64,000 nt of DNA from contig NC_135655.1 of NCBI RefSeq assembly GCF_964188315.1, forward strand, positions 84,568,001 through 84,632,000, read 5' to 3'. Source of the DNA: Podarcis muralis. Lineage: Eukaryota. Every line of letters begins with the position of its first letter. Position 1 is the first letter of the stretch. A model generated the notes under the pieces. The model was not told the origin of the DNA. It did not search any database and saw only the letters and a program-made list of their open reading frames with translations. This document shows, in pieces, positions 6,254 through 63,503 of this stretch. Position numbers and translations under genes: made by a program.

Positions 6254-9200
6254 TCAGAGGACAGTGCACATGATGGATTCCCTCTCCCTGTGGGAAGGGA
6301 TAATGTCGGGGAAGACATACCGCATGTCACTGAGGACCGAGTCATTCTCCTCAGGGGCCGCTGGCAAGGCGAGTTGCTGCTTCTCCGGCTCTTCAGCACA
6401 GCCTCTGCCCTTTGGGCCTTCTGTTGGCTTGTCCTCCTTTGTGTTGTCTCCTGCGCCCGGGCTCCTGGCTCTAATGGGAAAGGGAGCACCCGCCACTTCC
6501 TCACTGGGCCCAGGCATCCTTTTGTGTGCCCGCCTCGCGCTACCTCGCCTCTTCCTGGAGCTGTCTCGGGAGGCGCCTGCCAGGTGCTGCTGGCCCACGG
6601 TCTCCATCTCAGACAGGCTGTAGGCCAGGGTGGCCCGATGCAGCTCCTTGTCTTCGTCTTCAGGGTGGGTGAAAGAGAACCCTGCGCTCTGCGGGCGTGG
6701 CGGAGTCGGGATGTCCGTAGCAGACGAGCGCAGGATCTCGTGTTGCTCCGGCTGGATGAGCTCCACCGTGGCCTTCAAGTCGTTGTTGGTGAGGTCTGGA
6801 GGTGTGAACAAAGCAAGGGGTGAGGAAGCAGCCCCTTCAGCATCACTCTGTGGGCCCAGCACCCCTGAGGCTCAAAGGGGCTTTGCGCTCTGCCCCAGCA
6901 TGCAGCAGTGTCATTTGGATAGGAATGAGAGACAATGGGAGCAGGGGCAGGGTTCTTTAGCACCTGAGATAGCAACATAGAATGGGAAGCCTTCCCAGTG
7001 CCCCTTCAACCGCCCTCCATCAAGGAGGACCCACTGCCAATGTGAAAAGAATATCCTGACCTCAATGGATTTCTCTGCTTATTTTAATGTGGGAGAAACA
7101 TGGACCAGTTCAAGCCTGGACCCAAATAGTCTTAATCCTTGCACAGCTGCTAATGGGCGATGAGGTACAATGGATGCCCTTATTACTCCAGGGACTGCCC
7201 AGCCTAGAGTGAGCCATAGAGCTGCTCCTGCTCCTCCTCAACTTAGGCTTAGTGTCATCCATTGGCTCTGGCAGTCACAGTAAACACCAGTCACCATTGA
7301 CCGAGATGCAGGCCAAGACCCCCATCTTCCCTTCTAGATGTGTGCCCAACTCTAGTGCCCTCCGAGTTTGATTTCTTACCATTCACTCCTGCCACTTTGA
7401 GCTCCCCGTCTGCGTCAATCTCCATTCTCTCCTGCCCATTCTCAAGGATCCTGCAAAAGAGGCCTTGTCACATTGCATTGCAGCACTTGCCACATTGCAT
7501 TCTGGTCAAGCGTGTGCTGCCGCCACCCCACACCCCACACCCACACCCCAACAGAGGCATTCTTGGTGACTTCTTCCCTAAACTCCCTCCTGCTAGAAGC
7601 TCAGCACAATCCAAACCGGAGCATTGCTCAGAAGCACTGTAAGACTTAGGACAAAGTTAATACAGAGTGGCTATTTTTATCATCAACACTGAGAATGTTT
7701 CACTTCATTTTTTCTGCCTAACAGTTTTTAACTAACACAAGCACAGCATGGGGGCTAGTTATATATCTAAACAAATAAACTGATGGATTGGGAAACCACT
7801 GATAGTAAGCAGGAAACAATTGTCAAGATCTACTCCACAGGGGTAGGAGTTATTAGTTACCAGTATTATTATGCAAGAGCGAGAAGAGTCAGATGTACAG
7901 GGGATGGAGTGGAATTGCAAGGAATCCAAAGGACAAGCTACGCATTCAAAATTATCTCAGTAATAACGAGAACTGGTCAAGAGGAACAAAATGAAATTAA
8001 GCAAGGGCAAATCTGAAACGTTACAGCAAGGATAATTCTTTATTTGCAGTGTTGTGTTGAGGCTTGGACACTAAAGATTTTTAAACCCACACCAGTTCAT
8101 AAATGAACTGTAAGAAGATAAAAGGTTAAACAATCTGAGCAAAGGATCAGCCTACAGATTAAGGAAGGACAATATGCTGGTTGTTTTTAATAGTATTTAA
8201 AAAATCTCAGAAGGTGATCAGGTAGGTGGACAGGGCAAAAATAATTGAAGGGAAGCAGTTTTAGGTTAAACATAAGGAAGAATTTCCCATTTGTAAGAGC
8301 ATTTCATCACACATGAAGTGCTTTTGAAGGTCTCTTCTATTGTATTATTTGCACAGCCCATGAATTTGGGTTAATGGAGGACAGGTAATAGAAAAGGAAC
8401 ATATATTCTAAGTTCAAACAAAATGCCAAATGATGGTTTGGCAAAGTCCCGAACTCACAAACTCCCTCTTCCCCCTTCGCTCTCCATTCTCCTTTTGCAC
8501 AATTTGCTTTAGTGAGTTGTTTCTGCTCTTGCAGAAAATGATAGTTTGCCTTACATCTGATTAGGGGGCAGGCTAACTCGCTTGCGCCTGGCCCCTCCTT
8601 GTCATCTCACCTCCTGGTGGTTATCCGTTTGCCATTGATGTACTTAGTAGATGTGGAGACAGAGCAGAAGCCTATTCCTAATTCAGCACCAGGCCCAAAC
8701 GTAGTGAAGAAATCTAGAAGGGGAAAGTGACAACATCACTGCTGAGGGGGGAGGAGGCAGCTAGCGCAGGCCTCAACACCAGCCAAATGGCAGAGGCCTT
8801 CCCATACTGCAAATGTCATTGGGAATGAAGGGACTGGACAAAAGAGGCACCAACACTTAACAGGAGAATTGTTCCTTGGACATTTAAAAGCAGGGGTGAA
8901 TTGGGTCCTTGTGAGATGACAGAGCCAGAATGAGGTAGAGAAGCAGATATGGAAGAGGCAAAGTGTATTGGAGAAGCACAGAGGCAAACCCTGCAATGAG
9001 CATGTGCAGCAGATTGCCCACTGAGCTTCTCAAGGCTGCAAGGTGATGCGTCCTTACCTGTCTGGAATGGAGAGCTGTAGGAGCAATAGGAGTAGGTGGT
9101 ACAGCCTGGCACGACCCACTGGGTTATTCCTCCTTGAAGATCTGTATATGGGGACAACTCCTCTGGAAAGGAAGGAGGAGGCTGATAAGTGGAAGACTTT

Positions 9201-18742: not shown

Positions 18743-21700
18743 TCACAGGTTGTCTTGAAAGAGCTTGCACCAGCATTGGGAGCATCGCGGACAGGAAGAT
18801 GGGGCATTTAGGTCAAACATTTCCCCTTGGCTACTTAAATATGGAGACCAAGTCTTTCCATTATGAGCTGGAGCGTCAATATGTGGAAGAAGCATGCTCT
18901 TCCTTGGATTTAACTGGTTTATTCTATTCCAGGCTTGGATATTTTCCCACTGGTTTACTTGCATGGCCTGATTCGTTCCACGTGGTTTTCTTTTAGCCGG
19001 AAGTGGTGCTTGGCCAGCACCAGAGAACTCGGGGGCCCCACCAAAGAGAAACCTTGCTGTATTTTCTGCTGGGCCAAGCCAGACGGTAGCTGGCACCTTC
19101 CATGTATAAGCAGGCATAGTGCTCTCAGTGTGCTGGGGGTCTACTTTGTTACCTCTCCCATCACTGTTTTGGACCTGCACCTTGCTCTTCCCAGCATTCA
19201 GCTGCTTCTTCTGGACTGCCATGTTGTTCTTCACAGCATGCAACTCATTTTTCTGGACTTTCATCCTACTCCTCTCATCATTCAGTGCCTTCTTTTGGAC
19301 ATTAGCCTTGCTCTTCCCGGCGTGCGTCTTGTTTTCCCCAGCCTGCAGCTCACCCTTTTGGGAACGTTTTGCTTTTCCATCTTTCAACTTTGGCGATATC
19401 AACTTAGTCACCCTCCCTGACATCTCCTTACTTTTGATTGGTGAGGTTTTCCTCCTAGTGTACCTCAGGTGTCCAATACGTGGCTCCTGCTTGTCAGATC
19501 GTTCCTTCTGCCCAGCACACTGCTCTGTCCCACGATCAGGTTCACGTCCTGGATGGGATCTATGTTTCTGTGCTGAAAATTTCTCAGTTTGCATCTCATG
19601 CTTTCCAGGGGCAGCATCAGCTTCCCCACTCCGAAGCTTGTTCTTGGTGCTTGACTCTGACTTCTCATGCCGCTGTTTCGTCTTCCCTGTATGAAGCTTA
19701 TTCTCACCATGCAGCTCAGTTTTTAGCTTGGGAAGCTTAGCCTTCCCCGTATGGGTCTCCCAATCTTCGCTCTGTTGCCTGGCCTTTTCTGCATAGGCCC
19801 CATTCTTCTCAGTTGGGGCTTTCCTCTTCCCGTTGGTGCTCTCGCTATTCTCCACAAGAGGTTGTTTACCAGACTTGCTGCTCCTAGTGTGCAATGCGCT
19901 GTTCTCGACAGGCAGGTTTTTCTCCCTAGTCTGCAATCTCTTTCTCCCATCCTGGGTCTGCTTACCCTTCCCGACTGGAAAATCCTTTTTCTCAGGAGAC
20001 AATTGGTAATGCTTTGCCCGGTGTCTTTTGTGAGGCTTTCTACGTGGATGCAAAGGAAGGGGCTTGCTAGGCTTCTGACCTGGATCGTTGGACTCAGAAT
20101 CTGACTCTGAATTCGGTTCACTGGATTTGGAGCTTGACCTGCTACACTCAGAACTGGACTCAGAACTGGATTCATTAGACTCATCAGAGTTCAAGGTGGA
20201 ATAATGCTCTGAACTCGACGACTCATCATCAGACTCAAATGTTGAGTCATCATACTCAGAACAAGAGCTCTTGTCATTCTCCACACTCAACTCGTCATCC
20301 TGAGAACTTGGTTTGTCTGGCTTGGTGTGGTCTTTCTCGTCTACCGTATTACTCTTGTGTTTCTCATGGGCAGGCATCACACCTGCAATAAACCAAATTT
20401 TTAGTCTTGTGACTATTTTGCTCTGTTCACAGGACAAATCTAAGCCTGATTTCTATGCAGTGGAAACAGTTGTCTGTAGTCTGTCAGACTGTAGTCTGAC
20501 AGGTTTTTCACCTTGGTTCCTTCTGCAACAACCGCCATGTTAACGGGGGGATAAGTCCCCTTTCTTATAAGCACACAGAAAATTTAATGTTCAAGGATGA
20601 ATCTTCAGGCGCATAACAAATACATTTCCTTTAGTTAGTAGAACTTAAGCATTTCAGAAAAGAAGATAAGTGAAATTAAAAGCATAAGTCACAATTTAAT
20701 ATATCAGAAAGATACTTATACCCAACGTCCTTTGAAGGAGATGCATTTTTCTAATCTTTCTCAATTATCAAAGAAAAACAAGACTGCATTCCACAAAATA
20801 TACAACTTCTTGAAAGGATCTGATAATCATATGCCCGAAGTACATACAATGCAACTCCTGCAACAATTTTGATTAAACATAGCTTACTATCATCAAAGCA
20901 AAATAATTTTAGCAACATCTAATAGAACTACATCAAATACAGTTTCTTTTTTTAAAGTGTATATGGATGTAAGTTACATAGATATATTGTATTATAAAAA
21001 GCTAACTGGTACAAAAATGTGTTTGGCTCACACCTGAGCATAATAAAAGTATAAGTTATAAAAATAGCATTGCTGTGAACACAACTTGTTCAAATAAACT
21101 ATACAGGTGTTTTGATTAAGTCAGGCTGATTCAATATTTTCTCCTAAAAGGAGACAAAAGCATTTCGTTGCAAGATAGGAAATGGGGAATAGTGATGTGC
21201 TAGTTTGACACACAGGTCTAGGCTACCTTTGAAGGATGTTACAAAATCAGAAAGATGTCTTTGATTTCCATGTTAACAACTTTAATTGTGATGCTTTATG
21301 GCAAGGTAAATTAGCTTATAGGGCTTGTTCTAGTGTTTCCAGAACCAATCAAAATGGATGCAAAAATGAGTTCAGAAGTGAGCCTATTTGCCACAGTTTA
21401 TTTAATGGACAGTTCAGTTTGTGGCCTGGGATACTCAGCACTTCCATCTTACCTGAAGGCAAAAGTCAGCAAAGCTCATGTGCAAACCACACCATATTTC
21501 CTATAAGACCCCAGGGTGTCTCTTAGAGACCACCTGGTGAGCCCATTACAGTATTCTGAAGTGGTCAGGGCTCTTTGCATCATTAGACCCAAGTTGTTCT
21601 CTGTTCATTCATAGATAGATGGATCATTGAATTAACATATATGACAATACAAGCAACAGAAGACAAGATTAAATAACAATGGATGACTCATCAGTTAATA

Positions 21701-43464: not shown

Positions 43465-43508
43465 ATGCATCTCTCCAGCTTCCGGGGATTTATAAGGTTC
43501 TCCTTGGT

Positions 43509-44869
43509 CTAGGAGTTATAGGAGCAGCTGGAAGGGGAGGTCAGGGGAGAGGAGAAACTGCCCCTGCCAGGGATCCTATTTACTCTGCCCAGGAGCCTGC
43601 TGGAGATATCTGGGAGATGAGGTGTCATTCCCCCTCCTGTCCAGTAGGCTCCTCTTGGGATGTGTGCATGGATTGCTCTGCCGACGCATGGATTCCTGTC
43701 CCCTCTGGGCCAGTTGGAATGGTCTACAAATATATGGTTTCCACACAGGAAAGGGTTGCCTCCACTAGGCAGCTGCCTCACCCCTCTCTGAGGCGGGTTG
43801 TTTATGTTTGGGAGCTGGCTTATACTGCTTGCCCACTTGTCTCCTTCTGAAACTGGCTCTTTGGAAGGCTGGTGCCCTCTGCACAAAAGCTTCCTCGTTC
43901 CGTCCAGGAATTTCCTCATGCCTCCCAGAAGCCCTTCCGAGGCCTCCACTGGCTGCTTCCTGGCTCCATTTGGTCCCTGGCCCTGCTCCTCAGAAGGCAC
44001 AGCTGGCGGAGTACTTCCAGTTGTCACCCTAAGGGAGGCAGGTGATGCTTCATTGAGACCCGAAGACGGCCTGCTTCCAGAAGCCAACCTGTAGCCAGCA
44101 GGTCCTTGAGCATCTTCAGCATCTCCAGAAGATGGATCCAGAGGGTCGTGGGACTCACTGCATCTGGGATGTGAGATGCAGTCCCTCTGAGGGTTATTCC
44201 AACCCTCAAATTCAGGAGTCGGGGCATCTTTAAGCTGCGATTCATTCTGCTGCAGGGGCCACTCATACACAGGTGAGTACTCACATTCATACGGAGACTC
44301 GTACACTGGGGAGTCCTTGCAAGTATAGTGCGTTTCGTATATTGGAGGGGTATCGTAGCCGTATTGCCATTCATACACAGAAGAGTTGTCAAACCTGTAC
44401 TGAGACTTTGGTCCAGAGGTCTCATATATGCACGGCGAATCAGATGGAGAGATGTCATCATCGTACTGTGACTCATAAATGGGGGAGTATCCGCAGCTAT
44501 ACCGAGGGTCATATATGGTAGAAAACTCATATGCATTTTGAGACTCGTACACAGGAGAGGCTCCATTTTTCTTCACAGGAGATGAGCATCTGGAAGGCAT
44601 CTCGTAAGCTGTGTAAGAGCTGCATCCATACTGCTCTTCATACGTGGAAGACGAAGGATAGGCTGAAGGCACCTCATCTTTCACCACCTCATAGACTGCA
44701 CATGGGTTCTTCCACCTTTCGTAGGACTCAAATCCCCCAAGAGCCTCATCATCTTCATCATACCCCGGCCCCAATCCATTTCCATCATTCTCCTTGTATT
44801 CTGGGACCGACTCATACTCCGTCTGCATTTCACTGCCCACTGCTTCTATGTTGTTGCTTTCGTTTTCAC
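43509..44869 (-). CDS. Large alternative terminal coding exon of copy A (Tyr/Ser/Pro/Glu-rich repeats; long isoform ~658 aa)
   Basis: 1361-nt open frame after a pyrimidine-rich acceptor (tttgtttctgtggtcattgtag|GT GAA AAC). Its phase 1 matches the donor at 47090. AATAAA lies 45 nt past the stop (43459-43464). The link to copy A is inferred. Confidence 0.65.
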
Positions 44870-46025
44870 CTACAATGACCACAGAAACAAAAAACGTTGG
44901 GTTATGGAAAACGAGCAAGGTCCCAAATAAAGAAGAATGGCAACTTAAGCTGACGGAATATGCACAGCTTGCAGACTTAACATATAGACTAAGAGAACAA
45001 GAAGAACATACGGTTAGAGAAGATTGAAAAATGTTTATTGAATATATGGGGGGAACTGTGTACACTTGAAAATGCTGGCAGCATTAAGATAAATTCAACA
45101 GTGTAAATAAGTTTTGATGGATGTAAAAATGGAATACTGAATGGTTTAGTTTATGTAAAATATGCAGGGATTTATGATATGCAGAATGAACCATGGAAAG
45201 AGAAGAAGGGAAGTCATTGATATTTTAAGGATGTTTAAATGAGTATTCTAAATTGTAAAACAGAAAATCTAATAAAAATTATATATATATATGTAAAAAC
45301 CCGTTGGGTTATTTCTTTTTAATAAGCAATTCATTTCCCAAGACAAGGTTCAGCACTCCTAATACTTTCACCAATAGAAAGGGCACCGCTGGTGGGGAAC
45401 AAATTTCCATCCAGACCAGGGATGGTTAGGCTGTAGAGCTCCAGGTGTTGTTGGACTACAACTCCCACCATCCATGCTGGCTGGGACTGGTGAAGGTTGA
45501 AATCCGACAACCTCTGGAGAGCCACAGGTTAATAACCTCTGAAGTAGACAAGTCCCCAGCACTAGGAAGTAAAAGAGCCTGCTTTTTTAATTCATTCATT
45601 CCCATATCAAGAAAGAGGCTTACTGATGCTGAGGTACTTAACCAAAGAGTTGGAAGAACTCAGTCATGGTGGGCGAACACCAGAATCGTTTCCAGTCACA
45701 GAATTCTTGCCCCATACATAGTTTTGACATAACTTTTTCATAAGACCAGTATCTGCTCTAATGACCCATCATTATTTCTAAGATGAACCGAGAACGTATC
45801 AGACAGCGAGCCACAGCCTTTCCCAACCTGCTACCCTCCAGATGTTACTGGACTGCAATTCCCATCAGCACCAGACAACATAGCCAACAGTCAGAGATTA
45901 CAGGTATCATGGGCCCCGTGCTGCCAGCCAGGATGGGACGGGAATGCCAGAGAATGATCCAGAAGTCGGGGTGGAGAAAGTTCAGGCAGTGACTTGGGAG
46001 AGGGTCTTGCCCCACTGTTTTCATG

Positions 46026-48527
46026 TCACGATAAGGAAGAGGAGAATGAAGCTACCAGAGTAGCTGAGGAGGCAGCTGGCCAATCAGTGGAGCCAGGTGA
46101 AGTGGAGGTGGAGGAAGAGTCAGTGTTGAACTCGGGTCGCATTTCCAAAGATGTGCCATTGTATGCACCTGTATGGACAGCTCCTTCTCCCTGTAGGAGC
46201 GCATGCTCCCAAGCTCAGTCTTCTTGCTTGGAATGAGAATAGCATGAATGGCAGGCGCGCACACACTTTAAAAGTAGAACGAGAGCATCATGTCAGTTGC
46301 TGGGACAATGCCTGTGCTTATGCCTATTTTTGTGTTAGAAAGATGTACTCTGTACTTTGAGCTAATGCTGAAACCATGTGCTGATTTCATAAATTAACTT
46401 TCCCCAAGCTGAGAGAGTCTGAGTATTGTTTCCAAAGGTGGGAGCCATGACAATGAACTTTACAGTGCTTTAAGGGTGGTTCACTCCTACCCCTTTACTT
46501 ATGGAGAAGGGGGTGTCTAATCCATATGAGGATTTGTTGGTATAGTACAGTGTTAAAGTGGGATGCGGGTGGTGCTGTGGGTTAAACCACAGAGCCTAGG
46601 ACTTGCCGATCAGAAGGTCAGCAGTTCGAATCCCCACGCAGGGTGAACTCCCGTTGCTTGGTCCCTGCTCCTGCCAACCTAGCAGTTAGAAAGCACATCA
46701 AAGTGCAAGTAGATAAATAGGTACCGTTCTGGCGGGAAGGTAAACGGCGTTTCTGTGCACTGCTCTGGGTTGCCAGAAGCAGCTTAGTCATGCTGGCCAC
46801 ATGACCCAGAAGCTGTATGCCAGCTCCCTCGGCCAATAAAGTGAGATGAGCGCCGCAACCCCAGTCGGTCACGACTGGACCTAATGGTCAGGGGTCCCTT
46901 TACCTTTACCTTTACAGTGTTAAAAGATGATAGTTTAATTAACATCAAATACAAAAGTGCAATCTGTAGCCAGGACAAAAAGACTCAGGCCTCATACTTT
47001 ATTCTGTACCTGCCTGTGAATAACAGGTTGCTCTGGAATAATTCCGAGCTCTATGAACTTTACTGTGGCCCCAAATCATTTCTTCCTACCTGAAGCCTCA
47101 GCAGATTTTATCTCTCTATCATCCTTAGCTTCTACTTGTTCAGAATCTTTATCTGCAGACCTGGAAAATCAACACACTGGAGTTACCCAGTGGAAAGCAA
47201 ACAGATGGACATCCTTTCCCCATCTACCACAACGATGGCTGCTTTAAAAATCTATCAGTGCCCTTTTTAGATTCTGGACACATCTAGAAGATATGGGGCT
47301 ATAGCTCATGTCTTTTAGCTACTACCTAGCAGCAGAAGGCATGACACCCCCATACTCACGGTTTTCACATCCCTTGCAAGCAGCAGCAGCAAATGAAGTG
47401 AGGGGGGAACAGGGGAACTCTGAGCATGATGACATATTGTCACATGTCAGCTTTTACCAGATCCTGAGGTGGGGGGGGGGCACCTATCGGAAATGCAGAT
47501 CTATATCTGTATCTGTACATGGCAGAGCCATGTATCCCCAGCGCAACCCAGCAACCCAGATGCTTAGAAGGTTGAGGTAATTTTCATCTGCTTTAGTATT
47601 TTAACTTTTGTATCTTTTCAAGTATGGTTGTGATATAATCAAGCAGTGTACAAACTTTATGAAATAATATAAAAAAAAAGATTTAGTTCTGTCCTTCAGA
47701 TTTTTTCCATATAAGGATACATCTTTCTGGGTACTTTTTGGCTTAACCCTGCATAACCCTTGGCATCTCATTGCCAGATGCTGGGGAGAGAGGTTCCTAG
47801 GTTTTCTGAGGGCTTCCCTGCTGGGAGTTCCCTGCTGATAGACTAATGCTGGAAATGACCTGAGCTTGCTGTGCACATGCACCTCTGCCTTGAACCACTT
47901 CTTAGCTCTGTTGACCAGCAGCTACTAGGCCATCCCATCTCTGCTTCCCCTTGCATTCAGGGACAGCAGAGGCACAACTCATACCTTTTCCTGCTTATTA
48001 TGTTTCTTAAACTGAAGACTTTGGGATCAAGAGAGAAGAAACATAGTGATCTTTTGGGTCCAAATGTTATTGAAACACCTGCAAAAGAAGATGACAAATT
48101 CATTGCTGGGAACTTATGACCAATGCTAGCAGGCAACTGAGGTTTTCACTACGCTACTGTCCAGTTGCCAGTCATCCCTGCATCCCGTCAGATAGTATCC
48201 TCCAAAGGATGGTTATCTCTTTTTCCTTCAGGACAACCCCTGCCCAAGGCAGTTTGCCTTGTGGACTACAAGTGACCCTAAGCCACTCTGTGTCAGGCCT
48301 CTGAGTCTAGCCTTGATGTTTGAAAGTACTTAAAAGGATGTGCTCTTAGTCACCCAAATGAGAGCTGGAGAAACCCCTTTTATGTTCTTAGTGTATGTTC
48401 CTAATCTTCTAGTTTGAACTCTGAAGCTAGTTTCCTCTGCCTATCCAAGAGCACGTGACAGTGGAACTCAGTGCAAGCTCACACCTGTAGGGGAAAGTTT
48501 ACCTGAAAAAGGGTCTCAGCACTGCAT

Positions 48528-48573
<46 letters not shown>

Positions 48574-51500
48574 CACACACATGGAGTGGGGACTCACCCA
48601 GTCCTCTGCTCCTACTAGGGAACTGGCTAGGAGACCGGAGCACAATGGTCTATCCTATCTACAAGATGATACCTTCCCAATTCTATGTTCAAAAGCTGGC
48701 TAGACAGGCAGTTTAATCCTGCTGCAATGCTGGTGATGGGACAGAGTCCTCCTCCACACCACACCCTCCAACATTTCTCCGATGAAAATTGAGACGTCGC
48801 ATTCCATAATGATAATTTTACTATTTATACCCCACACATCTTACCCAGCCAGCCCCAGCCACTCTGGGCAGTTTCCAACATATATAAATATATAATAAAA
48901 CATTAAACTTTTTTTTAAAAAAAGCTTTCCTATATAGGATTGCCTTCAGACGGCTCAGGAGCTGGATAACTCCATACCCTCCAACATTTCTCCAATAAAA
49001 AGGAAAAGCGGGACATTCCAGGATCAAACCAGAAACAGGGATAACTTATCTAAATCAGGGATGTCCCTGGAAAATAGGGACACTTGGAGGGTCTGCCACC
49101 CCTGAGGGAGAAGGCTAAGAGAGAGGGTGCAGGCCAGGCCACGCAGAACACAGCTGGGTCCACTCTCTGCCCAGAGGCAGCTCTCACTCTACCTAATGAT
49201 AGGGCCATCCCTGGAGAATGGAAACAAGGTTTCTTTAACAACATGTAGGCTTTCTGCGCATTTAATCAATGCTACAAAGGGCCCTAATACACATTGATTG
49301 AAAAGCGGAGGAGTGGAAAACATTGGGGAGAGGGGGAACCTGCTACCCTACCCCTTGCAATCACCTGTGACTGAAAGACTGGCCCACGATATGGCAAAGC
49401 ATAAATTTGAAAATAGATTTCCTCCTCCCTTGTTGAAATTCAGCGTTTTGTCCACTGTGCCATACTGACTAGCAGAAGCAGCAAGTGAAAAGGTTCAGAG
49501 CTCAACTGGAGAAAACTGGAGAGCCAGACTAGCTACTAGAGAAATGGAGGTCAGCCCCCACAACAAGGAAAGATTTGGCAGGGAGGGGGGAGGAAGGACT
49601 CCTAACATCTCCCATAACAGAAGGAGAAAAGCTGAGAGGAGGTTACAGCCGACAGATCAGAAGGCAGAAGAATGGCAGAAGCATTCCAGGTTAGATAGAG
49701 GGATTCACATTTAAAGGTTGGTAACATCCTACCTGAGTCTTCTGAAATGGAGATGGAAAATAAGGGGCCTCGTAAGTACCATGGGACGTCTTCCTCCTTT
49801 TTGGCTGAGAAAGCAGAAGAGTGGGGATAAAATTCAACTCATGGCAACAGCAAGTGGCTTTATGGGCAAACTTAAGTCATTGCAATGCTGGAGTTGCTTT
49901 CTTTTTTATTGCAACCTCCACCACCACTCACTGCTGTTCTATCTGTTTAGAACCATCTCCCCTTTATTATCTACTTCTTTGTCAATTTCCTCTTTGGGGC
50001 CTTTTTAGGTGTTTAAAAACTGACCTTTGTAAACAGCTACATCAACCGTCCCAGATTTGAGTGTTACAGTGGAGGGATGTTCAGACTTTAAATACATGGA
50101 ATTCTGTTACTGCTACTATGAAATAAAATAATAATAACAGAAATGAAATACAACTCCTGCTACTACTGCCAGCCACAATGACTTCTGCTACTGCAAAATA
50201 GTAGCAACCACAGGGACAATAATGACAACATTGTTTTGGTTTCCTAAACAAACGGCTGTTAGTAGTTGCAGAATCTACCAAAGAAATTTGGTTGTTTTTT
50301 TGAAGTCTAATTTTCCACTAAGCTATGGTCCACGTTCAGCCTGGTAGAACTCCAGTGGGTGAGTAGATCTCCTGTCAATGGGAACCACAAGAAAACTGCA
50401 AACACTAAAGCAGGCCCTCCAGCTGTTTTGGGACTACAATTCCCATCATCCCTGACCACTGGTCCTATTAGCTAGGGATGATGGGAGTTGTAGTCCCAAA
50501 ACAGCTGGAGGACTGAGTTTGGGGATGCCTGCACTAAAGGACAGAGTTCACAGTTTTTACAGACAGATACCCAAGAGGAAAGGGTGGAGTGAGGCAAAGG
50601 GATCCTGAAATTCTTTATTCCTGGGGACTGTGGCCCTTTATCTCAACATAACAACCCTTCAGTAACAAAGTCTAAATCTTAGCTATCAAAACACAATCCA
50701 GATAAGAATGACGCTTACCAGCATAAGAGTCTGAGCTGCCAAACATCTCTCGGAAAACCTCCCAAGGGCTGCGGAAGGTGAATTTCAAATCGTCTCCTTC
50801 AGGAACTGCTGGGGTAGTAACATGATTTGCAAACACATCACTGAAGTCCTGGGATGCTCCCACTGTATAATTTTTATGAAGAAAAAAATGGAGAAGCCCC
50901 TTCCCTTTCTGTGTAGCCAGGATGAGTAGTCTGTGACTGGTGCTCCTTTGTGAAACACTCATGAAACCCACCTCTCCACTCGGCACAAGGGATTCTGTGT
51001 GAGCTGGTCACAACTGATGGGAGTTTTAATACAAGGTATCCAGAGGGGAGGGGTCTCCTTTGGGCTCCAGTTCTGGGTTCAAAATAAGATGCCATATGCC
51101 CTATATGTGAGGTTTGTGGGCCTTAGAAGAAAGATGTGTGAAATAGTAGAGAAAGTGTTGTGTATTCAGTGGTCTGTGTTTGCCTGAGCTTGAGTCTGGA
51201 CTAACGAGTCTGAGCCCCTGTGTTCTGATTCGATACATGATAGCCAATCACAGAACATTTCAGGATTTGGGCCTCTGTCATTGGCCCTTAAATTCTGACT
51301 TATGATTCGCAGCTTGGGAGTTTAGACAGCCAATCACATTGGGAGTAGGAGTGGCCCAGGCCTTCAGAAATGTATATAAGCAGTTGCTTTGCGCCTGTTG
51401 TCCCATTCTGTTAGTTCAATAAAGGTTCTTGCTGTTATCACTGTGTCTTGCCTTGTGGGAACCCACCTACGCTTCAGAAAGAATATTGTTACAAAAGCTG

Positions 51501-54133
51501 GATGCCTACCCCTCTCTCTGCCAAGTGGTGGCAAAAGCCCATAGGGTCCCAGGCACACACACAGGGTCTGTGTCCCTTTGGAGAATGGAAGACATGGGGG
51601 AGACTGTCGTGCTTTAAGAAATATGGCTTATTCACCTATTGACACCTTCATTCTGCATGGAGGAAATCCAGATCTTACAGCATACGGACTTCCAGAGGCA
51701 GCAGCACAAGCAACCTTCAGGCTGCTTCCCTCAAAAATAGATGCCAGATCTTCTTCTTCCTTATCTCTCCTAGAAACCTGTCACTTGAAAAATCCCTTTT
51801 CCTGTCCCCTCAAACATACACCCCATCACCTTGGTAACATCTCACCCTCCAGGCTAAAGGATTCCTCTCAACGCTTTGTGTCACATTCGGTTTGCTCTTC
51901 ACTAAGCCAGCCAGACTGCTTTGCATAAGGCAGCCTAGGAATTCCTTTGCAGCTTGCATTCTCCTTTCATACCACAAATAACCAAAACCATAGCATGTGT
52001 TGATTTCTAGGGTTGACCCTAATCTATAACATGGGTTTGAAATAAGATGCCAGACAAATCTTAGCCTATATGTGAGGTTCATGGGCCTTAGAAGAAAGGT
52101 GTGTGAAATAGTAGGGGGGAAATATGTTTCTTACCTGCTGCTGTGATTCCATCCCCATAGCAGTCATAACGTTCACGCTTGGCCTCTGAAGAAAGGAAGG
52201 AGGACTACGTTGGCAAATTCACAAGTAAAACGGTAATCTTTGCACCCTCTAGAAGCTATACTCTGGCTCTGCAATATAGATTATGAAACCTGGCTTCTGC
52301 AGGTAACAATGTTGGCTCCAGGTTTGGGGAGACCCTGAGTAGCCTCGTCTCTTTCTCATCATTGTTACTGCTGCCTCTTGACTTGTTAGGTGAATCCCGC
52401 CTTGCAGTTTGTTAAGGGTGCTGGGAATTTTAGCTCAGCTGGGGAGTAAACTACAGTTCCCATGCTCTTTTGGGGGGCAGGGAACTATGTGCTTTGAATG
52501 TGCTTTGCCCAATTTGCACCACTGCCACAGATGGAGGGCTGCTCTTTCTCTTTGCTCCTGTCCTCGCTCACTTGGTTTGGGCAAGTGAGCAGGCAATGAC
52601 AGCAAAGAGAATTAGCAGGAGTTCGATTAAGGGGCTCCCGGGGTTAGGAGTGGGAGCCCCTGATAGGGTGTGGGCCTTGGCAGATGCCTGGCAGTGCCAA
52701 TCCCTGATGACAAACCTGCCAGGCAATAATTTTCCATAGTTTACCAAAAAGGCCTCTCCCCATAATCCATGTCTATTGCTATCAACTCCCTGGTCTAGAA
52801 GTGTAATCGAAAATAAAGGGGGGAATTCCAGAGAGACAGCCGTCACAACCTCTGATGATTTAATGAAGTGACTTCGGCTAACAAGGGCTGTGAAAATCAG
52901 TGTCCCAAAGCCCAGGGAGACATAAGCCTATGGGATCCCAAATGATCTGAGAGTCAGTCGGTGGCAGAAAGATGAACTTGGGCGCTTACTGTCTGACAAC
53001 ACTTCATAAGCTTCTGTAACTTCTTTGAATTTCTGCTCAGCATAATTCTTCCTATCTGGATTTTTATCCGGGTGCCACTGTAGGGCTTTCTTTCTGTACC
53101 TGCACAGACCCAGGAGAGAAAGGGAATGCAGTATTTGAGCGTCACAGCACCTTCTGCAACAATAAACCGCCTTCAATGCAAATCCCAGTTAAGAACGTAA
53201 AAAGAGCCCAAACACCTATGTAGTCCTGATTTCTGTTCTTACAGTGAACAACCAGATGCCCATGCAGGACTGGCACAAGAATTTGGGGGGCCTTAGCATG
53301 GTGCCAATTATGCCCCACCCACCTATACACAAACACCACCACCTCAGCCAGGCCCAGCCCAGCTGCCCCCACTAGCATACTTTTTCTGCCCCAGCTGCTA
53401 TTTTGGTGCTCTCCACTGGGCCACCAGGCACTGACCATTGTCTTAAGTCCCCCAAAATCAAATGCCCCAATCCATAAAGCTATGGAATCTATAGATGGTG
53501 GACAGTCACCAGAAAGGTAAGTTGAGTTTAGTAGGGCCCTTCTTGTTCTTGCTCTAAAGCACTGCTGCTTGTCTACCACTGAAACAAGTCTGGTGGCCCA
53601 GTGGGGTACAGTCCATGATGCAATTGCCAAAGCACCACTTTCTACATTAAAGAAAATACACTATCACATACCCTCTGACATCCCACTGAACAAAATCAGG
53701 GCGCTTGTTCTTTTGGTTCCCAGCTCTCACGGGAGCCAGCTGATTCGCACAAGCAAGCGAGACCAAGAAACAAGCATATTTTGGTTTGGTGCTCTGACTC
53801 AAGCCAGCTGACTCACACAAGAGTGGCAGGTGGAGAAACAGCACATTTCAGGATCCGGTCAGAAGCTGGGATGGCTTCTGTAATTCCAGGATGCCCCACC
53901 TAAAATGGGATAGTTGAGGGGCATGCTGTCATGTATTAAATGTTGTCTGATGTGTTAATTGAACTGGCATCAGGAATCTTTTCTTCCTGCCTCACACATG
54001 GCTTGAGTTGCGGGAAAGGCCCCAAGAGAGAACACTGAGAATTCAAGAGAAAGACTTACGCCTTTTTAATATCATTGTCGGAGGCATCCCGAGGAATCTC
54101 TAAAAGCTTATAATAGTCTGGCACGGCATCCAT
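46026..54133 (-). CDS. DNAJB2-like paralog, array copy A, short-tail model, ~252 aa
   Basis: Exons 54133-54060 ([25 protein letters not shown]), 53099-52990 ([36 protein letters not shown]), 52185-52135, 50862-50719 ([18 protein letters not shown]), 49804-49733, 48078-47985, 47160-47090 (71 nt, phase 2 to 1 like DNAJB2 exon 8), 46168-46026. 759 nt, in frame with GT-AG sites. The last four exons are strongly diverged and were assigned by size and phase. Confidence 0.75.
46560..46912 (+). mobile_element. Sauria SINE, full length, with target-site duplication
   Basis: tRNA-like head, (ACCTTT)n tail; TACAGTGTTAAA at 46546-46557 and 46913-46924. Confidence 0.9.
48531..48570. repeat. (CA)n microsatellite
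   Basis: Visible dinucleotide run. Confidence 0.95.
48750..49095. repeat. Interspersed repeat, two tandem fragments of the ccctccaacatttctcc...gggacacttggagggtctg family
   Basis: Same motif string at 16500-16650 and reversed at 56640-56790. Confidence 0.55.
50411..50531. mobile_element. Palindromic hAT-type MITE
   Basis: Near-perfect hairpin (ggactacaattcccatcatccct / agggatgatgggagttgtagtcc); exact 8-bp TSD CACTAAAG. Related copies near 18500, 27130, 32220, 33150, 34790, 40370, 45417 and 57540. Confidence 0.85.
51156..51493 (+). mobile_element. Solo LTR
   Basis: TG...CA ends, 4-bp TSD AAAG, two AGCCAATCAC boxes, TATATAA and AATAAA in U3-R-U5 order. Confidence 0.75.
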
Positions 54134-54445
54134 TCGCCTGTCCTGTGCAGAAACCAGTAGTAGAGAAACGGGGAAAGAGCGGCTGCAAGGGGAACAATGT
54201 CTCTGGAAGCACCGAAGGCGTCCACACAACTTGAGCTGCTTCTAGGGCTGACCATGGCCGCACTCTTGGCTGCACTGCTCCTTACAGCACAGCAGGAGGT
54301 GGGTGCTGTGGGCAAAGGGCCCTGCAGGGGGAGAGGAAACAGAATGAGGCGCCGCAGAATCTGTCCATCCCACAAGAACTCCCCACTGCATGCACACAAA
54401 GGGAGAATGAACACGGTGGTGATGATCTGCTTCCCAGGAGGTAAA

Positions 54446-54448
<3 letters not shown>

Positions 54449-54486
<38 letters not shown>
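54449..54486. repeat. (TG)n microsatellite
   Basis: Visible dinucleotide run. Confidence 0.95.
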
Positions 54487-54487
<1 letters not shown>

Positions 54488-55368
54488 TCAACTCAGAATT
54501 TCACCAGGTTGCTTCTCCATTTGAAGAATCCACTTCTCCACTTTCAGCTCCTATTTATTAGAAAAGCAGTGCACACACATGCCTTTTTGAATTGCTGCGA
54601 TGGAGGGGTACAAAAGGCCTTCTTGGCCAACCTTGCCTCTCAAAGACAGGGTTTGTCCAACCACCAGACCCCAACTGACCAAGCAACACAAACTAGATGC
54701 CAATGCCACCCCAATAAATAAGTCAAGAACATGTCCAAGGGAAGGACATGGCCAGAATGATAGTACATCAGGGACTATGTGTCAGAATTGTTTATCTGTG
54801 AACAGGATCCTCATTTTCTCTTGGGTCCTGTTCACGTAGCTGTCCCGGCAGTAACCATACATGGGCCATGCATATGCACTTACAGGTTTGTGTCATCCTA
54901 TGAAGTTTGTAGAGTTATCCTGTGAGTGTCAAATGTTATCTCACTCAGAAGAGAGCTTGTAGTGTCTATTTAGTTCTGGGCATTTCTGTTGCTTTATTTT
55001 TTATTTGCTCACTAGCATGATTACAGAAATAGACTGACTACCACACAGAACAAATAGCAAACTAGATAAAATGGCAGGAACCTTTGGCCACCAAATTGTC
55101 CCTAGCACAGGGGAAAGAATGAACGCCGAGTCTGTGGTGCACTTAGGTCTCATGGAGGAACAACAGCATCCCAAACTTATAGCAGTACCGATCGGAGGAT
55201 CTACCAGGAAATGTTGGGGTTTTATACTAGTTTTAACTTAAGTTTGGGTTCTTCTTAGGCTCCGGTAGGGCAAGATCAGTGGAGGAGCTACACAGTGAAT
55301 GAAACTGTAGGATGGAAGGCTTTCCAGAATGGAACAAGTTATAGTGTAAGACAATGAGGTCACCACCT

Positions 55369-58164: not shown

Positions 58165-63503
<5,339 letters not shown>

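Follow-up and report, generated by a model that had tools for sequence, protein, structure and literature searches.

A 64,000-nucleotide (nt) stretch of the Podarcis muralis genome (contig NC_135655.1, positions 84,568,001 to 84,632,000; hereafter the window, by whose numbering all positions are given) contains a minus-strand series of four J-domain exons with the His-Pro-Asp (HPD) motif, located near 53.0, 37.7, 25.1 and 12.1 kb, in a tandem array that occupies 6254-54133. The gene at the 53.0-kb end, copy A, joins a J-domain to a long terminal exon that encodes a tyrosine repeat. Its eight coding exons run from 54133 to 43509 on the minus strand, as determined by tblastn with P0001, the Podarcis lilfordi orthologue and the closest database protein (98% identical over exon 8, corresponding to P0001 residues 188-640, and 100% identical over exon 1). 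It is close to certain that copy A is a real, conserved J-protein with a J-domain and a tyrosine-array tail. The parts of the gene and of its tail, with the evidence for each, are as follows.

54059-54133, minus strand: exon 1, the start Met and the first 25 residues of the J-domain (tblastn, P0001 residues 1-25, 100% identity).
52991-53098 (3' edge approximate), minus strand: exon 2, the J-domain core with the HPD motif (Pfam DnaJ PF00226, E 6.9e-15; tblastn, residues 26-61).
52136-52195 (edges approximate), minus strand: exon 3, the end of the J-domain (tblastn, residues 59-78, 90% identity).
50711-50857 (edges approximate), minus strand: exon 4, a segment that resembles the 'DVFREFFG' helix of DNAJB2/B6 and is invariant in squamates (tblastn).
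49731-49835 (edges approximate), minus strand: exon 5 (tblastn).
47985-48109 (5' edge approximate), minus strand: exon 6, a segment invariant in squamates (tblastn; 3' end from the transcript joint of 47158 to 47983, cut +2).
47090-47160, minus strand: exon 7, a 71-nt acidic linker exon (both edges from the spliced X1 contig described below).
44870-47089, minus strand: intron 7, 2220 nt, GT..AG, containing a repeat element at approximately 46560-46910 (X1 joint, skip of 2220 nt, CT..AC, cut +2).
43509-44869, minus strand: exon 8, the terminal coding exon, 453 codons and the stop codon at 43509-43511 (translation; kept to the last residue in squamates).
44226-44828, minus strand: acidic Tyr-rich region, modelled as disordered; exon residues 15-215, 28 Tyr, net charge -30 (composition; predicted local distance difference test score, pLDDT, of ~30).
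44256-44501, minus strand: core array of the 12-residue repeat; exon residues 124-205, five clean units and one irregular stretch (Tyr lags, DNA lags, repeat logo).
43875-43934, minus strand: GLLGGMRKFLDGTRKLLCRG, the best-conserved element of the tail, a low-confidence predicted helix shared with turtles (alignment; helix 502-517 in the model).
43563-43625, minus strand: (M)TPHLPDISSRLLGRVNR, a conserved C-terminal motif of the basic tail part, also present in turtles (alignments).

The J-domain was recognized by Pfam in the orthologous full-length protein (DnaJ, E 7e-26). P0001 scored 90.6 bits against the PF00226 cut-off of 27.8, and exon 2 alone scored 55.3 bits. The string WHPDKNP lies in exon 2, and H34, P35 and D36 are invariant across 11 orthologues. 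A preliminary description, made from the sequence alone, had predicted that exon 8 is transcribed and joined to the J-domain exons through a junction of 47090 to 44869. In run X1, from a related species at approximately 2% divergence, one contig of 1321 nt matches 44388-44867, resumes at 47088 after a skip of 2220 nt, takes in the 71-nt exon 7 and, after a second skip of 824 nt, continues from 47983 into exon 6, with a further 669 nt beyond. Both joints read CT..AC, that is, GT..AG on the minus strand, with a cut that can be shifted by 2, and the first agrees exactly with the predicted junction. Two 2.3-kb Logan contigs from another squamate (L001 and L002, from SRR6291263 and SRR6291270) hold a 649-codon coding sequence without interruption, with the J-domain and the full tail (protein P0033); as seven introns divide the 10.6 kb of the gene in the window, they must represent full-length mRNA. 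The same fusion of J-domain and tail appears in the gene models of at least 10 squamate genomes.

On the minus strand from 44870 to 43509, translation gave an open frame of 453 codons closed by a stop codon, and a polypyrimidine tract with AG at 44871-44870 lies directly ahead of exon 8. The translation holds the 12-mers YSCGYSPIYESQ, YRFDNSSVYEWQ, YGYDTPPIYETH, YTCKDSPVYESP and YECEYSPVYEWP and the looser units AVYE, SPVYE, CIYE and TIYD, which are all of those listed in the preliminary description. Tyr accounts for 14.9% of the residues encoded by 44240-44720, Ser for 16.1%, and Glu and Pro for 10.6% each. Pairs of Tyr are enriched at a lag of 12 residues (11 pairs against 3.6 expected, z 4.5, equalled in none of 5000 shuffles) and also at lags of 4 (z 3.8) and 8 (z 3.2), which together describe a Y-x3-Y-x7 pattern with a 12-residue period. 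A 36-nt periodicity in the DNA, proposed earlier as a check on the repeat, was found as well: identity at lag 36 was 0.427 against 0.28 in codon shuffles (z 6.8), lag 72 gave z 4.2, and a repeat search recovered five 51-nt copies of 61-73% identity at spacings of 36, 72, 102 and 36 nt. Tandem Repeats Finder reported no 36-nt array in 43500-44900 because the repeat is too diverged, so that the lag statistics were needed. By these measures the repeat is old and diverged, with no recent expansion. The array logo reads Y-x-[YC]-[DEK]-x-S-P-x-Y-[ED]-[WST]-[QPH].

The tail as a whole has three parts: the array lies in the first, which is acidic and Tyr-rich; a Ser/Pro/Gly linker comes next; and the C-terminal module, which is basic and lacks Tyr, includes the putative helix. 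The net charge is -30 over exon residues 1-215 and +9 over residues 311-453. AlphaFold2, run on the full protein with an 11-sequence alignment, modelled the J-domain alone with confidence; the tail had a pLDDT of ~30, with a weak helix at residues 502-517. The charge and the model both fit the acidic, disordered-looking context that had been proposed for the repeat. Invariant columns in GLLGGMRKFLDGTRKLLCRG are L322, D323, G324, T325, L328, L329 and R331, and the basic C-terminal part also carries an LP[DN]I..RL motif.

A protein search with exon 8 returned 16 proteins at E 1e-78 or better, all from squamates, with a J-domain predicted in most. Two of the 16 are Logan transcript contigs. The lizard and amphisbaenian matches are from Podarcis, Rhineura, Hemicordylus, Phrynocephalus, Pogona, Paroedura (a gecko), Sceloporus and Anolis, and the snake matches from Liasis, Candoia, Crotalus, Pseudonaja, Naja and Thamnophis. 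Intact orthologues are present in at least 14 squamates, and the frame, whose disruption in close relatives would have spoken against the proposal of the preliminary description, is open in all relatives found; the squamate alignment is collinear from the start Met to a common C-terminal ...SSxSYNS. Against 1.84 billion representatives, a tail profile picked up just two further species, the turtles Gopherus flavomarginatus (E 5e-19) and Pelodiscus sinensis (E 3e-7). Neither this search nor a word-indexed search with the turtle-inclusive profile found a relative in birds, crocodilians, tuatara, mammals or amphibians, and the turtle C-terminal module used alone as the query returned the two turtles and nothing else. 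Four weak matches (P0022-P0025) were rejected as unrelated repeat proteins. Its presence in squamates and turtles places the origin of the copy A gene no later than the common ancestor of lepidosaurs and turtles.

Between the window and the X1 species, exon 8 shows 12 synonymous and 14 non-synonymous differences, corresponding to a non-synonymous to synonymous ratio (pN/pS) of ~0.34; this count covers 26 of the ~30 differences in the exon. Over the Tyr-rich region, Tyr is conserved at 78% and Trp at 95%, compared with 19% for Val and 15% for Ile. In the repeat logo, drawn from the five clean units through 14 squamates, conservation is 86% for Y1, 74% for S6, 64% for P7 and 84% for Y9; position 3 is Y in 56% and C in 24%, and position 10, immediately after Y9, is acidic in 100% (E 86%, D 14%). 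The tyrosines and the repeat thus persist in other lizards, a point on which the preliminary description had made its proposal depend. The five units are positionally orthologous in squamates: unit 2 closes with EW and then Q, H, K or R in each of the 14 species, with the Tyr also kept in 12 of them, unit 4 always has Lys at position 4, and unit 5 has YEWP or YDWP in 10 of 14. These unit-specific signatures, kept across lineages, indicate that the array was already established when squamates radiated and has undergone no homogenization since. Column identity is 0.71 in the array (residues 124-205), 0.62-0.66 in the flanking regions of the tail and 0.79 in the helix segment.

The turtle proteins share the J-domain and the basic C-terminal module, and again have an acidic Tyr block (-15 to -22) followed by a basic Tyr-free part (+13). 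Their units differ, with five of 18 residues in Pelodiscus and three to four of 25 residues in Gopherus, but every turtle unit begins P-[GA]-Y-E, mostly preceded by Thr or Ser. The core is [ST]-P-x-Y-[ED] in squamates; the shared core is [ST]-P-x-Y-E, expanded independently in turtles.

These data bear on the possibility that the repeat arose by neutral expansion of low-complexity sequence and has no function itself, exon 8 being dispensable or misannotated. Such an exon would be expected to lack matches to any domain, structure or literature, as this one does, and three same-species bulk RNA runs (X19-X21) gave zero reads on exons 6-8. These runs were sampled at ~12% each, or ~12.7 million records per run, and the result means that expression of copy A is probably restricted or low. 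A neutral expansion is nevertheless very improbable and largely refuted, given a 453-codon frame intact to its last residue in at least 14 squamates, the low pN/pS, spliced transcripts from two other species, an array more conserved than its flanks, and turtles that retain the same core motif.

RNA signal was seen in intronic sequence. The element at 46560-46910 in intron 7 reached ~200-770x per strand bin in all three same-species runs, with many loose ends and internal joints, and is flanked by consensus strings such as GGTTCGAATCCCCGCGACG that are tRNA-derived in look. It probably belongs to a family of short interspersed nuclear elements transcribed from many loci; ARAGORN found no tRNA within it. 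A lower but distinct RNA coverage of up to ~26x per strand bin was also seen at 44900-45540, just upstream of exon 8 within the intron, and included a joint of 45183 to 46561 without splice-like ends. This signal probably represents more dispersed repeats and not part of the gene.

The neighbourhood identifies the family to which copy A belongs. An open reading frame (ORF) for the C-terminal part of alpha-tubulin (58165-59064; Pfam Tubulin_C, E 8e-54) flanks the array on the copy A side, and human DNAJB2 neighbours TUBA4A. Downstream of the fourth J exon, a minus-strand ORF at 6254-6862 holds a string that resembles a ubiquitin-interacting motif (UIM), a short motif without a Pfam call, which we take to match the UIM of DNAJB2. 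Short isoforms at the turtle locus are named 'dnaJ homolog subfamily B member 2-like' by NCBI. This arrangement suggests that the locus comprises a true DNAJB2 (copy D, with its J exon near 12.1 kb) and three tandem paralogues, A to C, with unrelated tails. Copy A has a J-domain closest in sequence to that of DNAJB2 and, on sequence and gene order, is a tandem DNAJB2 paralogue between the UIM-bearing DNAJB2-like copy and the alpha-tubulin gene. Its translated tail contains no UIM-like string on reading and none by Pfam, which makes it a paralogue and not the DNAJB2 orthologue; the tails of the copy A protein and four orthologues gave no Pfam match beyond DnaJ.

Copy A therefore resembles DNAJB2 (HSJ1; class B'(ST), with DNAJB6 and DNAJB8) in its J-domain, in a DNAJB2/B6-like segment after the J-domain, and in its position beside alpha-tubulin. 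It differs in lacking UIMs and in that its C-terminal half is a 453-residue tail with no detectable homologue beyond squamates and turtles. Class B'(ST) proteins have a Ser/Thr-rich region followed by a beta-domain, and when this feature was examined, AlphaFold placed three short strands in exons 5-6 at a pLDDT of 32-45. A 2025 preprint on B'(ST) evolution covers B2, B3, B6, B7 and B8 alone and includes no reptile B2 tandem paralogues.

Because the copy A tail has no second match elsewhere in the window, the main differences among the paralogues seem to lie in the terminal exons. A minus-strand ORF of 564 codons at 18743-20437, which opens with an acidic, Ser-rich segment and goes on into Lys-rich repeats, has no match in Pfam and appears to be a further new low-complexity tail of a DNAJB2 paralogue. 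In a 405-residue snake gene model (P0019), the J-domain and first part of the tail of copy A lead straight into a second, copy B-like J-domain; this chimera looks like annotation read-through, and from it the tandem order A-B can be seen to persist in snakes. A plus-strand ORF at 54197-54721, immediately upstream of exon 1 of copy A, has a VCVCVCVCV run that reflects a (GT)n microsatellite.

The preliminary description had read the [IV]-Y-E sites as Src-family kinase substrates that, once phosphorylated, would dock SH2 domains in the manner of EPIYA motifs, making copy A a phosphotyrosine scaffold that brings Hsp70 to tyrosine-kinase complexes. Several features speak for such a scaffold. Tyr and the acidic residue after it are the best-conserved positions of the repeat, and each full-length squamate orthologue has 29-38 Tyr in an acidic tail that is modelled as disordered. 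YESP, which is the consensus Vav SH2 binding sequence (PMC2196311), occurs once, Y-[ED]-x-P occurs 2-5 times and Y-[ED]-x-Q 0-6 times per orthologue, and the turtle units contain an EPIYA-like E-A-Y-A. The Src-like residue ahead of Tyr, however, proved to be species-specific. There are nine [VI]Y[ED] sites in the window species compared with 0-5 in other squamates and none in Anolis, and the residue before Y9 is V in 24% and I in 13% across 14 squamates. This lack of conservation weakens the Src-specific reading. What is conserved is the Tyr itself, the acidic residue at +1, Ser-Pro at -3/-2 and Q (39%) or P (34%) at +3; none of the +3 residues that define SH2 classes is uniformly kept. Where the likeness to EPIYA proteins, Tarp and SLP-76 has a sequence basis, it is a four-residue match. 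We accordingly regard the Src and SH2 scaffold, as first drawn, as doubtful.

Two further interpretations of the tyrosines were considered and rejected. A PPxY ligand of WW domains, seen at unit 3 (TPPIY), is not a conserved feature, this position being S-P-x-Y or C-S-x-Y in 6 of 13 other squamates. Tyr sulfation does not suit a protein with an N-terminal J-domain and no hydrophobic signal-like stretch on reading, whose parent DNAJB2 is cytosolic.

The main rival to a docking array is a charge-segregated tail of stickers and spacers, in which the acidic Tyr/Trp block would pair with the basic block or with clients to form condensates or coacervates to which the J-domain brings Hsp70, with no need for a reader or for phosphorylation. 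The step from -30 to +9 along the tail, repeated in turtles, is what such a role would use. Tyr is far commoner than Phe (12.3% against 1.1%), the whole tail is modelled at low confidence, and a neighbouring paralogue likewise ends in a long low-complexity ORF. The unit-by-unit conservation among squamates, with Ser-Pro at -3/-2 and an invariably acidic +1, nevertheless exceeds what composition alone would require, and the Tyr region carries too much negative charge to self-associate unless a basic partner is present. We consider a purely charge-driven role unlikely.

Our overall best explanation, to which we assign a probability of roughly 50%, is that copy A is a sauropsid-specific tandem paralogue of DNAJB2 with a multivalent Y-E docking tail that would target Hsp70. 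By the rule of the family, its J-domain, with an invariant HPD, would activate Hsp70. The C-terminal UIMs of DNAJB2 choose its clients, and the tail of copy A would replace these ubiquitin-binding motifs as the targeting module. This replacement would have taken place in a sauropsid ancestor, and no orthologue is detectable in birds, crocodilians or mammals. The Y-[ED] array would then serve as a set of multivalent short linear docking motifs for a folded partner. Fixed positions that alternate with variable ones, kept over the squamate radiation, favour recognition of motifs over compositional stickiness; we judge it an even chance that the array works as a specific multivalent docking module. 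Tyr phosphorylation with SH2-type readers would be the leading candidate mode of recognition, and a dependence of docking on phosphotyrosine is put forward tentatively. A fuller version, in which ~10-15 [ST]-P-x-Y-E sites would be phosphorylated and the resulting SH2 scaffold would deliver Hsp70 to tyrosine-kinase assemblies to remodel or dissolve them, seems to us somewhat improbable.

Several observations weigh against the docking tail or its phosphotyrosine form. Exons 6-8 received no reads in the three same-species runs, and the residue ahead of Y9 varies as described above. The single YESP is the sole defined SH2 consensus present and is kept in about half of the species. In columns where Tyr is the majority residue, it gives way to Cys in 28 cases, Phe in 14, a gap in 11, Asp in 8, Ser in 7 and His in 6. 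Because Cys replacements reflect easy Y-to-C transitions as much as selection, the readings are not discriminated, and on these counts a need for the hydroxyl group is neither established nor ruled out by the Cys/Phe pattern. The AlphaFold alignment held 11 sequences, which makes the call of disorder a weak negative, and an acidic block followed by a basic one would fit a condensate role of a purely electrostatic or aromatic kind as well.

Auxilin and GAK (DNAJC6/DNAJC26) combine a J-domain with a disordered array of multivalent short motifs that docks the protein on its target so that Hsp70 acts there, and the model proposed for copy A follows this logic. The analogy to copy A is one of mechanism only: auxilin has a C-terminal J-domain, DPF, DLL and clathrin-box motifs, and PTEN-like and kinase domains, with no sequence similarity to copy A. 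The acidic region of SLP-76, the YESP of ZAP-70/Syk, the YxxP array of p130Cas and the nephrin tail likewise present clustered Tyr-acidic motifs in an acidic disordered context, and one YESP is exactly shared. These adaptors are not homologous to copy A and have no J-domain, whereas copy A has [ST]-P-x-Y-[ED]-[WST]-[QP] in a regular 12-residue register, each unit having two or three Tyr. Bacterial EPIYA-type effectors (CagA, Tarp) and Pragmin repeat short Tyr motifs in disordered acidic segments, and the turtle units contain E-A-Y-A, a putative resemblance; copy A is instead a host gene in which the residue before Tyr is unconserved and Tyr is followed in squamates by Glu, not Ala. Like the Tyr-rich low-complexity domains of FUS and EWS, the copy A region favours Tyr strongly over Phe, has a Ser/Gln/Gly-rich make-up with SQYG-like strings, and is modelled as disordered. 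The copy A region is net -30 and not near neutral, its positions are conserved residue by residue and its units are positionally orthologous; we thus rejected its classification as a prion-like or FUS-like aromatic low-complexity domain.

The remark in the preliminary description that no such DNAJ architecture was known still stands, as no Pfam family, solved structure or paper was found to show the copy A arrangement. A profile search of the PDB with the tail gave a chance match alone (E 0.42), and ESM Atlas feature searches with the Tyr region and the C-terminal module gave no usable match. In the literature, no paper mentions the six LOC identifiers, and nothing useful was found on the two SRR accessions or on 'subfamily B member 2-like'. 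Copy A has already been predicted in many reptile genomes under the names 'uncharacterized LOC' or 'J domain-containing protein', and is an uncharacterized J-protein with a new targeting tail.

J-domain proteins direct Hsp70 to its sites of action, and the informative part of such a protein is its targeting tail. DNAJB2 itself is linked to human neuropathy. The tail of copy A is without known relative and would have arisen by tail replacement in a tandem DNAJB2 copy. Its unit-by-unit conservation in all sampled squamates, together with the re-expansion in turtles, points to a specific partner. If that partner reads phosphotyrosine, copy A would be the first J-protein with a direct connection to tyrosine-kinase signalling; we know of no J-protein with a direct link between phosphotyrosine signalling and Hsp70. 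If it does not, copy A would still be a clean natural case of chaperone retargeting through the swap of a disordered tail, and three paralogues with unrelated tails at one locus would offer a compact system for studying tail swapping.

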